A stretch of 63,984 nucleotides of DNA, filler included, from Choristocarpus tenellus KU-1152 (Eukaryota; Protista; Phaeophyceae): NCBI GenBank assembly GCA_964200185.2. It is 12 parts of 12 records of this genome, joined end to end, with 100 filler letters (N's around TTAATTAATTAA, not from the genome) between each part and the next. Parts side by side here need not be neighbours in the genome. Positions count along the whole stretch, not along the records: positions 52,628 to 57,334 come from CAXNAD020013388.1; 11 more parts are not named here. One strand, given 5' to 3'. A program made the position numbers and the translations under genes. This document shows, piece after piece, positions 52,528 to 57,434 of the stretch. The number at the start of each line of letters is the position of its first letter. Position 1 is the stretch's first letter. The notes beneath the pieces are model-generated. The model ran no database searches. It was not told where the DNA came from and worked only from the letters and a program-made list of their open reading frames with translations.

Positions 52528-52846
52528 NNNNNNNNNNNNNNNNNNNNNNNNNNNNNNNNNNNNNNNNNNNNTTAATTAATTAANNNNNNNNNNNNNNNNN
52601 NNNNNNNNNNNNNNNNNNNNNNNNNNNCCCCCCACCCCCACAACAAAACAACCCCCCCGCCCCCCCCCCCCCTCGTTGTTTCCTACAACCTGCCCCCCCC
52701 CCCCCCCCAACCTCCAAATGAACATATCAAAACATCAAACAGAATGCACCCCCAGGACCACAGGAAAAAGGGAGAGCGGGGGTAGGGTGTGAGGGTACCA
52801 AAGGGGGAAGGAGGTGCACTTCTTCTTCTCTCACTCACTCACTCAC

Positions 52847-55746
52847 CACAGGAACTAATGGGGCGAGCTCCACCCTGAGCTTTCCAGAAAATCGAATCTT
52901 GGAGAGGGTGATCACCATGGGAACAGGTTTCACTCCTGCCTCCAGCACAACTTCAGCATCACTAGCCCACCGCATCTCCATTTCTAACACCACCATACCC
53001 TTCCTCATATCCAGCACACGCGCACCCACCACCTTTCACAAAAAAAAAGATTTTTTTTTACATTTTTTTCTACGGTGAATGAATGACTCTTGTACGATAA
53101 AATATTATACATACATATATATATATACAGCATTTAACACAAAATAAAAAAATTGCAATTTTGTCGCAGATGTGTCTATCCCCTTTGCCCCATAATCATA
53201 CATGCCACTACTGGAGTTACATTATGAACTATATTGTTTGATATTGGTATATTACACAGAACATGCAGGTAGTTGCTTCCCCCCCTCCAAAAGGCTAAAA
53301 ACTATATTTTTTGTAATATTACATTCATTCTCGAATATTCACACTACACAACAGTACCATTCTTCCATCATTCTTTATTTCATTTTGGTGCCATTTGTCA
53401 ACTCCCTTCCAAGTCAAGCTCTGGCATACAACATTGTATCCACAAGAGTCAGACTATACAACATGCCCCTTTAGGCACTGGTCCCAAAATAACACCACGT
53501 GTTACTTAATACAGTAGAACATACTGACAGACTAAACAATAAGGTATCTGATGTGATCCAAACAAATAGTCAAAGAACACACACACACAACACACACAGA
53601 GATCTCTTCAACTACGCAACCAAGTGCAAGCGCACACACACCTTAGGAGCCTTGGACCCAAGAGATACAGTGCGGAACCCAAGAGCTGTAACGCCTGCTG
53701 GTTTGTAAGACTCCAGAAGCGGCTCCACCGATGTCTTTACGATCTCCTTCACTGCACCGGATGCAGGCACCCACAACTGCAAAGCAATATATTTTTTTTG
53801 GGGGGGGGAGGTTCAGGGCTCAAGAGCTCTACATTCCTATCAATGCTATTTGTACCGGAGTTTACACAGGCACTGTTCACCCTAAACCCTAGAATGAACA
53901 ACCCACACCTAAGCCCTGCGTTCCCTCCAATAACCTCCACTGCCGTTCACACCAGACTCAATTCCCTCTCAACACACGCCCCTTCCCCAGTCATACGAAC
54001 TCCCAAGATAACCACACACAAGTTTCAGAGCATACAAGCATACCATCATCTGCAGCACTACAGCATTCTCATCACACACACGTACCATGCAACTATCACT
54101 AAGCTCACTGCACCAGTATATAAAGAGTGTACATATGTTAGAAAAAAAGGTATTTCTCATTTACCTTCTGTAGTATCTTGTTTATCCACTCTACACGCTC
54201 TACCTCGGAGTCAGTATACCAAGCCGGCAGGAACGAAGTCACCTGCTTCAGCACCTGCATTCGCCATAGTAGATGCACAGTGATGATGGGGGGGGGGGAG
54301 AGGGGGGCACAAACAGATACCACAATCCACAATGGACAGTTACATGAGTATGCTTAGGAGCAACAAGAATAGACACAAAAGCTATGCATGGCATGGAGAC
54401 AGGGGGAGGAAGTGAAGGGATGAATCTGGGGGCAGGGGGAGGCACTACAGAATGAGCAGTACGCATTATACACACATAGATGTTCTCCTTCAAGCATCCA
54501 ATTCAAACAAATATCGCAACACTACCTTCAATTCAACTCACGCTCTTTGCAGTACTCCAGAAACAGGAAAAGTAATATAAATACAGCATATATATACATG
54601 TATGTATACATTCCTGGCTGTACAGGAGATAACTTACCATTCGTGTATCTCTACCCTTTACAACCGAGCAATAAGAAAATAGTTTGTGGGTAAACTATGT
54701 CGCCATACTTCTCTGTAGCAAAACTGGCGTTCACACACACCAAACCAAAATAAACAAATCCTCTGCCCTCTCATTGCCAGCACCCACTTCACCACCATCA
54801 CCCCCAAGACGTTACATTCCTCCAGCTCACAACAGGGACACCCAACAGCTCAAAACTTAGAAATAGTAACCGTATGCATGTCCATGTGCATGTGTGAAAC
54901 ACCGATAGCCCACAGTGGTTCCATTGTCCACATGCAAACATGCAAGTCAACATCAGCACCATAAATAGGGTTTCAGTTGTCAACAGTACAGTATGACTAA
55001 GAATTAAACAACTAACTCCTAATCGTGCATACTCAACTCCTTGTACTGTTCCAGGCAAATGAACCACATCAAACAACCCCGTGACAGCTGATTTACAACA
55101 CACAACTAAAAAGGGGAAAAAAATAAAATAATCCGGATTAGAGGGACACAGCCTTCCTGTGAACGCCATGCCATCTCTATTAAAAACCCTGGCCAGCAGA
55201 GCACAGGGCGAAACAAACGCACCACAAACGCCACCTAGCAAAACCGTCCCAATCCATTACAACTCCGACTCCAACAGTTTGAAACACAAACCTGGCACAA
55301 TATCATGGAATGATCCTCTCCCGGAATGATTTAACATTGAGTATGCTTTTACTACCCTCCACCACAAAATGAACATTGCCACATATCACTACCAAAACCT
55401 AACAAAGAAAAACGTCCCAGATTCTACCCCCCTCCCCCACACCCCCGCTCACCTTTGCATCTGTCACAATACCCATTGCCACTCCAGTATCTGCCTTGTC
55501 CTTGACATGCTGTAGATAGCTCACCATCATCACAGCCAACATCATACACAACCACAGTGGCACCTCAAACCATGCAACAGCCACCGGGATCGCTGCCAGA
55601 GGAAGATACCATGAAGGCCCAAAGGACCACGCATCATAATCCTCGTGAACCTGGCGCATACGCTTCACGGCCTCTGCCCTCTCTCTGGCAGCAGTTCCGC
55701 CTCCTCCCTTACGCTTACTAGTGCCAGATAAACTTTGGTCAGAGAT
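52847..55746 (-). CDS. Extended-synaptotagmin/tricalbin-like region: hydrophobic hairpin + SMP (TULIP) domain; exons about 55746(or 55732/55717)-55453, 54254-54165, 53776-53642, 53032-52847; 3'-truncated
   Basis: WYLPLAAIPVAVAWFEVPLWLCMMLAVMMVSYL hairpin, then VLKQVTSFLPAWYTDSEVERVEWINKILQK|LWVPASGAVKEIVKTSVEPLLESYKPAGVTALGFRTVSLGSKAPK|VVGARV..VLEMEMRWASDAEVVL..LSKIRFSGKLRVELAPLVPV. This is the SMP signature (LP.W..D.ERV.W.N..L..W..LG..P..RW..I.F.G..R..L.PL). All three internal introns are phase 0. Confidence 0.88.
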
Positions 55747-56600
55747 CTGCTCTCACACCAGAGACCAAAAAGGGGGGGACAAGTAAGAGGATCAGCCACA
55801 GAGGCTGAGAGTAGAGCATGTTTCATGTTTCATGTTTCATGTTTCATCAAGCATACGCCACGCCCATGCACACGTCTATTCGTTATGGTTACGTCGACCA
55901 AACGGTGGCTTGTCCAACATTACAGTTGGGAAACAGGAGGCGTGTATTGTACTCTCCCCGCGACCTGATTGGCTCAAGAGTTAATTGAGGCTAGGCCTAG
56001 GGCTAGGGCTAGGGCTAGGGCAGCAGAAAGCTTTCGTGATCTCACCACTCCAATGGCACCAAATTGGCATACAAAACATAACCGTACTACACACTAGGCC
56101 GCATCCGGCTACAAACATATGCCGCAAACACGGCGGGCGATATTTTTCTTGAACGCACGAGCCAATCAATCAACTGTCAAAAATACTTACGGCGCCCACA
56201 CCACAAAACAAGAGGGCGCCCTATCAGAACCATTTCCCATTCCCCAATGGAAGAAAAGAAAAGAAAAGAAAAGAAAAGAAAAAGAAAAGTGGTGCATACA
56301 CGCAGGCATACTGTACTGTACTGTACTGTACTGAGTGTGTAAGGTGTACTACAGCAATCCAACACCGAACACACTCACTATTTCATTACCCACGATGTAT
56401 GTCACAGCCCGTCCTCCTTATTGGCATCAAGAGTGCTACCGTAGCGCTCCAGAGCACCCCACAAGAATAATAAAAAAACAAAATCTGAAGTATCGCAATA
56501 GGGAACGCCCAACCCCCCTTCCCCCCCCCCCCCAAAACAACACCCAAACAACCAAAAAAAAAAAAAACAAACCCCCACACCTAACCCCCCGCGCCTGTAC

Positions 56601-56737
56601 TTGGTGGCCTCATCCACACGTTTCATGTGTTCCACTGCCTGCCCCTCCTTCACTTTCAAAGGCATATCATCGACCATACCCGCAACGATGACCTTCAGCG
56701 CTAGCAACAAGTGCTCAGCCACAACTGCAATCAAAAT
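56601..56737 (-). CDS. Anoctamin/TMEM16 final transmembrane exon (5' part of the gene is beyond the contig end)
   Basis: Acceptor tatgtcag|ATT then ILIAVVAEHLLLALKVIVAGMVDDMPLKVKEGQAVEHMKR, matching the TMEM16 TM10 signature hhhhEHhhhhhKhhh.hhpD.P..V. Confidence 0.72.
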
Positions 56738-57434
56738 CTGACATACAGACCAGGGTAGTTCAAAGATTGAGGTGTGTATCGGAATGTACGTGAGGGTGTG
56801 TGTGAGGGTGTGTCATGGGACAAGTTATTTTACAGCAGCAGCAACAGCAGTAGCAAAGCCCTGAAAAGAATCCTTGCTCAGTATCACGAGGGATTCAATA
56901 TTTGGGAGGGGATAGAGGGGTGCAGGAAAGGAGGGCCTGCGCATGTGGGGTATCTAGAGCCCTATACCTTCCACCATTACATTTGATTTCAAGGGAAATC
57001 GCATCCCATTATCAACAGCAACGGCAAAAGGATACACTCCACTCGCCGCAAACAGCACAAGATGAAACTGTTAAAATTGGATTAATTAATTAAACTATTA
57101 AGTTGGAAACCATGCTACACAGAATGTATGTAGTACCAACATAGTGTACAGTAACAAGAGTATACTGCAGGGCGATTCCTGAGAGGGTGACAAAAAAAAC
57201 ATACGATTCTATACCATCAAAAGGGGCATTTTTTTCAAATTTGAAAAATAAAACGAAACAATCAACAAGATGATCCCCCCCCCCTTCCCCCCATTAACCT
57301 ACTACTTTCGAACACAATCGTATTTTCACTCCTGNNNNNNNNNNNNNNNNNNNNNNNNNNNNNNNNNNNNNNNNNNNNTTAATTAATTAANNNNNNNNNN
57401 NNNNNNNNNNNNNNNNNNNNNNNNNNNNNNNNNN

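Follow-up and report, generated by a model that had tools for sequence, protein, structure and literature searches.

A TMEM16-type anoctamin and an extended-synaptotagmin-type hairpin–SMP module joined in one gene of the brown alga Choristocarpus tenellus

Introduction

Lipid-transfer proteins serve one leaflet of a membrane only, and sustained transfer should therefore need a scramblase nearby. In the ATG2–ATG9 and VPS13A–XK pairs, lipid transfer at one leaflet is coupled to re-equilibration of the leaflets, and TMEM16K, of the anoctamin (TMEM16) family, is a Ca2+-activated scramblase resident in the endoplasmic reticulum (ER). Scrambling by Ist2, a TMEM16-family protein of yeast, sustains lipid transfer by Osh6 (PMC12617493), and both Osh6 and Osh7 are recruited by Ist2 (PMC8282664). 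Here we describe a locus of Choristocarpus tenellus KU-1152 in which a single chain joins a TMEM16-type anoctamin to the hairpin–SMP module of an extended synaptotagmin (E-Syt). The locus occupies positions 52628-57334 (CAXNAD020013388.1) of the window, by which we mean the whole stretch of DNA analysed (63,984 nucleotides (nt), assembly GCA_964200185.2), and the exons in this piece come from mid-gene of a single gene; to the fusion itself we assign a probability of about 0.85. The predicted order along the chain, as judged from the sequences, is a TMEM16K-like anoctamin of ten helices, a short charged cytosolic linker, the hairpin, the SMP domain, and one or more C2 domains.

The preliminary description of this DNA took the architecture to be uncharacterised, and the literature agrees: a full-text search that included reviews on SMP proteins and on Ist2–ORP coupling found no description of an anoctamin–SMP fusion, and no report that E-Syts or other SMP-domain shuttles have a partner scramblase. 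Fused proteins are already present in public databases under generic names and are not recognised as a class; what the present analysis contributes is the recognition of their architecture, and no new sequence.

Results

Five exons on one strand carry the end of an anoctamin and the start of an SMP domain

The gene is read on the minus strand of the piece, where five consecutive exons from mid-gene (A to E) can be followed. Exon A (56593..56737, with the acceptor tgtcag| at 56740-56738) encodes helix 10, the end of the anoctamin/TMEM16 domain, followed by the first residues on the cytosolic side; its translation is ILIAVVAEHLLLALKVIVAGMVDDMPLKVKEGQAVEHMKRVDEATKYR. Exon B (55453..55748) encodes a charged linker (ISDQSLSGTSKRKGGGGTAARERAEAVKRMRQVHEDY), a hydrophobic hairpin (DAWSFGPSWYLPLAAIPVAVAWF-EVP-LWLCMMLAVMMVSYL, with two hydrophobic arms of ~15 residues each) and the lead-in to the SMP domain. 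The SMP domain itself starts with VLKQVTSFLPAWYTDSEVERVEWINKILQK in exon C (54165..54254) and continues through exon D (53642..53776) and exon E (52847..53032), where it includes the motif ITLSKIRFSGKLRVELAPLVP; each of these three exons is phase 0. The hairpin thus stands in exon B directly before the SMP domain, the order found in extended synaptotagmins. That the helix 10 exon lies on the same strand as the hairpin and SMP exons, about 850 bp upstream of them, had been noted in the preliminary description and is correct: the interval between exons A and B that is skipped by the transcript described below (55749..56592) measures 844 nt.

Evidence that these exons are joined in one transcript comes from three public sequencing runs (X1, X2, and X3; none is on record as RNA), which we compared as contigs with the window. 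One contig of X3 (record 17; 2123 nt) matches 52845-53029, 53639-53776, 54165-54251, 55450-55748, and 56593-56740 with zero differing letters and has a depth of 577, as against 3-4 for the X3 pieces that lie in introns. Its three downstream joints, which skip 1198, 388, and 609 nt, read CT..AC on the plus strand and hence GT..AG on the gene strand, and they confirm the exon borders B/C, C/D, and D/E. The joints are absent from X1 and X2, whose contigs cover introns and exons alike, as DNA would. From this depth pattern and the splice-like joints we infer that run X3 behaves as RNA. The contig reaches beyond the piece's five exons at both ends, extending 160 nt upstream into anoctamin exon sequence and 1088 nt downstream past exon E, and both ends are in frame: upstream it reads ...HLETIEG before QILIAVV, to be compared with ...LLDSFEG before RIILALF in P0005, a fused homologue described below, and its loose downstream end at 52845 reads VPCFGAIMAT, to be compared with VPCVGAVAV of the same protein. 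Exons A to E are thus joined, with the A–B join in frame, so that both domains fall in one reading frame of a transcript-like contig.

The identity of the exons was assessed by alignment with fused homologues and by Pfam and solved-structure searches, the latter two made exon by exon with single exons that are short. Exon A aligns with residues 722-770 of P0005, 200-248 of P0006, and 582-628 of P0029 and is covered by the X3 piece 56593-56740; its sole match among solved structures is to residues 592-621 (helix 10) of human ANO10/TMEM16K (E 0.28), and its match to Pfam Anoctamin (positions 428-457/460, E 0.015) scores 14.6 bits against a cut-off of 28 bits because the exon is very short, the rest of the Anoctamin domain lying off the piece. 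The alignments place it at helix 10, and in the X3 contig it is continuous with upstream anoctamin sequence. Exon B aligns with P0005 790-867 and P0006 268-345, is 48-50% identical to P0001, P0002, and P0003, and is covered by the X3 piece 55450-55748. After the hairpin it reads QHVKDKADTGVAMGIVTDAK, with QHVKDKAD...GIVTDAK and then the SMP start, and the hairpin together with this QHxKDKAD..GIVTDAK lead-in is shared by P0001-P0003 and every fused protein.

Searched singly, exons C, D, and E (30-62 residues) gave no SMP match in Pfam, and exons D and E found nothing among solved structures. The three exons are collinear with P0005 866-1003 and P0006 353-480, at 52-77% identity to the P0005 part: exon C is 77% identical to P0005 866-896, exon D 54% to P0005 893-942 (and 66% to the metagenomic contigs L001 and L002), and exon E 52-55% to P0005 941-1003 and P0006 419-480. 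The SMP_LBD matches of P0005 and P0006 (48.9 and 58.3 bits, cut-off 27) cover most of this counterpart of exons C to E. We take a Pfam match of exon C to NCBP3 (E 0.023) to be a chance hit.

Single-chain homologues with both domains

An exhaustive HMMER search with exon B returned 25 matches, in many of which the hairpin lies far from the N-terminus. In P0005 (1418 residues), Pfam places Anoctamin at 291-758 (350.7 bits), SMP_LBD at 884-1068, and C2 at 1084-1180, with the hairpin at 789-865. The best solved match of its anoctamin half is TMEM16K (PDB 5oc9, E 4.6e-56), and that of residues 882-1210 is SMP-C2A-C2B of E-Syt2 (PDB 4p42, E 1.7e-41). Since P0005 is one uninterrupted open reading frame (ORF) of 1418 codons (L005 3001-7257, on a 32-kb eukaryotic metagenome contig), neither splicing prediction nor gene-model merging is involved in its architecture. 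P0006, an ORF on a Trinity transcript of the xanthophyte Tribonema gayanum (EukProt), likewise matches Anoctamin and SMP_LBD, as do P0020 and P0024 (Anoctamin at 228.9 and 237.6 bits), and C2 exceeds the Pfam cut-off in P0005, P0006, and P0020. Helix 10 and the hairpin also stand in one ORF in P0008, P0010, P0012, P0014, P0018, and P0019, where the linker has ~200 residues. A second search retrieved 12 proteins with precomputed PF04547 and PF17047, nearly all of them with PF00168 as well; P0041-P0049 include KAG5191948.1 of Tribonema minus, annotated as 'calcium-activated chloride channel-domain-containing protein'. Homologues with both domains, which the preliminary description had proposed to look for, therefore exist, both among stramenopile algae and among uncultured eukaryotes, P0005, P0006, and KAG5191948.1 being examples.

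The taxa named among the family matches are Tribonema, one brown alga, and one foraminiferan transcriptome that is possibly contaminated. The brown alga is Discosporangium mesarthrocarpum, whose partial protein, a fragment of the hairpin region, is the best match of exon B. The foraminiferan entry is a 1400-residue member of the P0044 cluster filed under Bolivina argentea (EukProt), while the others in that cluster derive from genome contigs at NCBI; contamination from prey or from a diatom kleptoplast donor may explain the entry better than a foraminiferan gene. In KAG5191948.1 (P0046), the stretches around residues ~290-330 and ~150-175 repeat linker (ERNNAIAALRK...) and helix 7 (DEYLELAIQ...) sequence relative to the T. 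gayanum transcript, and the N-terminal half of the anoctamin domain is missing; the repeats and the truncation are probably gene-model errors of the public record. P0004 (1593 residues, 27 matched stretches, DUF1045/MazG_C) was set aside as a low-complexity false positive.

The window's linker upstream of the sole in-frame ATG is conserved with the fused homologues (ERAEAVKRMRQVHEDYDAWSF against ERNNAIAALRKVRKESEPWSF in Tribonema), and translation must therefore come from upstream. Motifs of the DEYLE type in helix 7 and NNxxExxxD in helix 8 are found in 14 of 15 fused proteins, and NxxE in helix 6 in eight; on the basis of established TMEM16 structures, we take these helix 6, 7, and 8 motifs to belong to the Ca2+ site.

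Metagenomic relatives share the exon order and spacing

A word-indexed search with exon B found the metagenomic ORFs P0001 and P0002, at 46-48% identity in that search. In their contigs, L001 (part of a contig of 54.8 kb) and L002 to L004, anoctamin exons lie upstream on the same strand. The window's exons A to E are collinear on L001 and L002 at 43-66% amino-acid identity, with the helix 10 exon ~0.8 kb upstream of the hairpin exon. Over their length, these two contigs carry 17-20 collinear exons on one strand that cover P0005 residues 188-1204, with the C2 exons downstream.

Between the helix 10 and hairpin exons, L001 and L002 carry a 144-nt linker exon (MEEREQAKQLRMLAHNIKAQEHK...). This exon is coding, as seen from 13 synonymous against 2 replacement differences between the two contigs, and its join to helix 10 is in frame because the donor and the TGTAG|ATG acceptor are both phase 0. 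A conserved non-coding block of ~55 nt, GCTGAGCT.GCACTGACAC ... ACCGTTATTTACCGTT, immediately precedes the linker exon (L001 9602-9651 and L002 9515-9568), and the other introns of these contigs are conserved for only ~10-15 nt before the acceptor. The block could be a branch-point region, or it could be an internal promoter or 5' untranslated region of an SMP-only product. Intron positions differ in part from those of the window: an intron between ...KIHGE and S(E/D)AWSF in both contigs (L001 9811-10118, L002 9716-10013) is absent from the window (55660-55640), and conversely the window's D/E intron is missing from L001 and L002, in which the counterpart of exon E is itself interrupted by an intron.

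The join between exons A and B

Between 56593 and 55748 the X3 contig carries 18 nt that are absent from the skipped interval (TCATGGCTCACAACATCG on the gene strand, codons LMAHNI). Position 56593 is base 1 of a codon, and together with the 18 nt and the two bases 55748-55747 it makes 21 nt (1+18+2) that read L-M-A-H-N-I-E, after which 55746 opens an exon B codon; the product across the junction, ...DEATKYR-LMAHNIE-ISDQSLSGTSKRKGGGG...AWSFGPSWY..., is open throughout. LMAHNI resembles MLAHNI of the L001/L002 linker exon, with 12 identical nucleotides (GCTCACAACATC), and fits the pattern R-[LM]-x-A-x-[NG]-[LMI]-K of P0005, P0006, and P0020.

This join differs from the one first proposed. The preliminary description had offered the donors AA|GTACAG (56601) and AG|GCGCGG (56595), through both of which the X3 contig reads to 56593, and acceptors at 55732 and 55717, which are unused; it had also supposed that the canonical CAG acceptor, with its exon start at 55746, would shift the frame. 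That acceptor is the one used, the contig fitting the window from 55748, and the frame is kept by the 18 extra nt. Its statement that no stop follows the helix 10 exon before its donor is borne out up to the point at which the transcript leaves exon A. Two phase-0 donors that we considered, CGT|GTGGAT and GGT|GTGGGG, are not used by the X3 transcript.

Even with as many as 3 mismatches allowed, the 18-mer is found nowhere in the window, no part of it of at least 7 nt occurs on the gene strand of 55700-56640, and tblastx against L001 and L002 found no further conserved exon in the A–B interval. The DNA contigs of X1 and X2 cease to fit the window at 56593, exactly where the transcript departs from it, and again at 56242; 56243-56592 is unmatched by their contigs, and the bin 56396-56552 has zero depth in both runs, a coverage hole that alone proves nothing. 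From 56592 downward the window turns to G-rich and G/T-rich low-complexity sequence, of which similar runs are found at the ends of the piece (52628-52720 and 57274-57300). Probably, the window is mis-assembled at 56243-56592 and exon A really continues through the 18 nt to a normal donor; otherwise, the 18 nt would be a micro-exon from sequence that is missing from the window. The A–B interval also contains perfect or near-perfect microsatellites, (CATGTTT)4, (GGCTAG)5, (AAGAA)8, and (TACTG)5, at 55817-55847, 55989-56021, 56251-56289, and 56309-56333, and the GGCTAG array, read on the gene strand as CCCTAG/CCTAGC, is one base off the telomere-type unit CCCTAA.

Discussion

One gene or two

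That a single gene in a single frame encodes both domains is concluded from the X3 contig, the single-chain homologues, and the same exon order and spacing in L001 and L002. The preliminary description had already proposed one gene spanning anoctamin and SMP domain and had asked for a transcript across 56737->55453; the conserved exon order and the homologues uphold the proposal, and the X3 contig, at a depth of 577, spans the join. Several points weigh on the other side. The RNA nature of X3 is read from its depths and joints and not from a library record, and contigs, which drop rare variants, cannot show where transcripts start and end or which rare isoforms exist. The 18 nt of the A–B join have no place in the window sequence. 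Of the anoctamin, helix 10 alone lies in the window, and the Ca2+-site motifs are read in homologues, their exons lying outside the piece. The linker exon of L001 and L002 opens with an ATG that directly follows a stop, with the conserved ~55-nt block upstream, which would also suit an internal start of an SMP-only product. Finally, the 90%-identity cluster of P0017 and P0029 mixes SMP-C2-only calls of 714 residues (NCBI, Logan) with a fused model of 1390 residues (EukProt), P0017 starting at about residue 667 of P0029; the short form may have arisen only through ORF-type gene calling, or it may be a genuine short isoform.

Were there two adjacent genes, one for an anoctamin and one for an E-Syt-like protein, the X3 contig would have to be read-through or a chimera and the fused proteins merged models. 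The linker-exon ATG and the block before it speak for such an arrangement, as do the stop that follows unspliced exon A after 6-8 codons in L001 and L002 and the clustering of 714-residue with 1390-residue forms; but P0005 is one uninterrupted ORF with no merging of models, six further ORFs run uninterrupted through helix 10 and the hairpin, the T. gayanum protein comes from a transcript assembly, and the in-frame join in X3 codes for LMAHNI, a motif of the family. Ahead of the conserved linker, the window contains no ATG in frame, and its unspliced exon A stays open for 60 codons into poly-T/poly-G sequence. Two genes are on this evidence very improbable. The same features of L001 and L002 can also be accommodated by a fused gene with additional shorter products, an SMP-C2-only protein from an internal start and an anoctamin-only protein from intron retention or alternative splicing, by which the organism might toggle between coupled and uncoupled forms. 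In its favour, the linker-exon ATG is conserved, the 55-nt block is unusually conserved against 10-15 nt elsewhere, early stops follow unspliced exon A, and short and long forms fall in one cluster. X3, however, contains a single joined form (with the reservation that contigs lose rare variants), the window's linker head has no ATG, and the 714-residue proteins were called as ORFs on short contigs and need not reflect real transcripts; we consider such shorter products unlikely, though less remote than two genes.

A scramblase coupled to a shuttle

Given one chain, it is plausible that the scramblase is coupled to the SMP shuttle at a contact site. Like TMEM16 proteins, the product would be an ER-resident dimer, and its hairpin would dip into the cytosolic leaflet, as in extended synaptotagmin, with SMP and C2 facing the cytosol. 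The topology is coherent on this model: helix 10 would end in the cytosol and the hairpin would return to the same side, so that SMP and C2 would be cytosolic. Upon a rise in Ca2+, the C2 domain or domains would dock onto the partner membrane, the SMP module would shuttle glycerolipids from or to the cytosolic ER leaflet, and the scramblase on the same chain, with Ca2+-site residues that the family retains, would re-balance the ER leaflets at the place of lipid removal or addition. For scrambling, lipid transfer, localisation, and dimerisation alike, we extrapolate from relatives, a further point to be set against our reading, and we give the mechanism as a whole about even odds.

The fusion could also be real and uncoupled in function, the TMEM16 half being mainly a dimeric anchor or tether in the ER, or else an ion channel, and the SMP-C2 half working like any E-Syt. 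TMEM16 proteins include pure channels and tethers, and coupled scrambling by the fused proteins is a prediction from relatives. Moreover, the hairpin is kept despite ten anchoring helices, so that the E-Syt module looks self-sufficient. Against this, the nearest solved relative, TMEM16K, is an ER scramblase, and the fused family has conserved the Ca2+-site motifs. A linker of 50-60 residues is kept across distant members, which suggests that close spacing of the modules matters, and for Ist2 scrambling does sustain Osh6-mediated transfer (PMC12617493). We regard a mere anchor or channel as somewhat unlikely. The boldest form of the coupled model, that of an obligate single-chain contact-site machine across ochrophyte algae and uncultured eukaryotes, in which one Ca2+ signal would switch a scramblase and a shuttle ~50-60 residues apart, is possible and is put forward tentatively.

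A conserved fusion of a TMEM16K-like scramblase and an E-Syt-like module is genetic evidence for a link between the two activities, and TMEM16K-type proteins become candidate partners of E-Syts where the genes are separate. The fusion also offers a compact object for reconstitution and cryo-electron microscopy, in which the chain fixes the stoichiometry and the spacing of the modules. If the machine were obligate, it would be a natural 'Rosetta stone' indicating that SMP shuttles, like bridge-type proteins, need an adjacent scramblase, and it would predict an undiscovered TMEM16K–E-Syt partnership in animals and fungi.

Comparison with known systems

The described systems each share part of this architecture. 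ATG2–ATG9 and VPS13A–XK share the logic of coupling, but they consist of separate proteins with bridge-like RBG folds and unrelated scramblases and involve no gene fusion. TMEM16K/anoctamin-10 is the nearest solved match, and the acidic motifs of helices 6-8 are kept in the fused family; TMEM16K, however, stops soon after helix 10, whereas here the chain goes on to the hairpin, the SMP domain, and C2 domain(s). E-Syts and tricalbins, with E-Syt2 as the solved example, have the same order of hairpin, SMP, and C2 (the C2 part being seen in homologues and lying off the piece here), yet the E-Syt hairpin is N-terminal and the sole anchor, whereas here it comes after a ten-helix scramblase of ~750 residues, and fewer C2 domains (one or two) are detected. 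Because the hairpin is preceded in frame by helix 10, and in the homologues by a whole anoctamin, the protein is not a plain E-Syt. The nearest published concept is Ist2–Osh6/Osh7 at yeast ER–plasma membrane contacts, which also pairs a TMEM16-family ER scramblase with a lipid-transfer protein of the shuttle type; there the association is non-covalent, through a long disordered tail, and the shuttle is an ORD module, whereas the gene described here would place the scramblase and an SMP module in one chain, with a linker of only ~50-60 residues between them.

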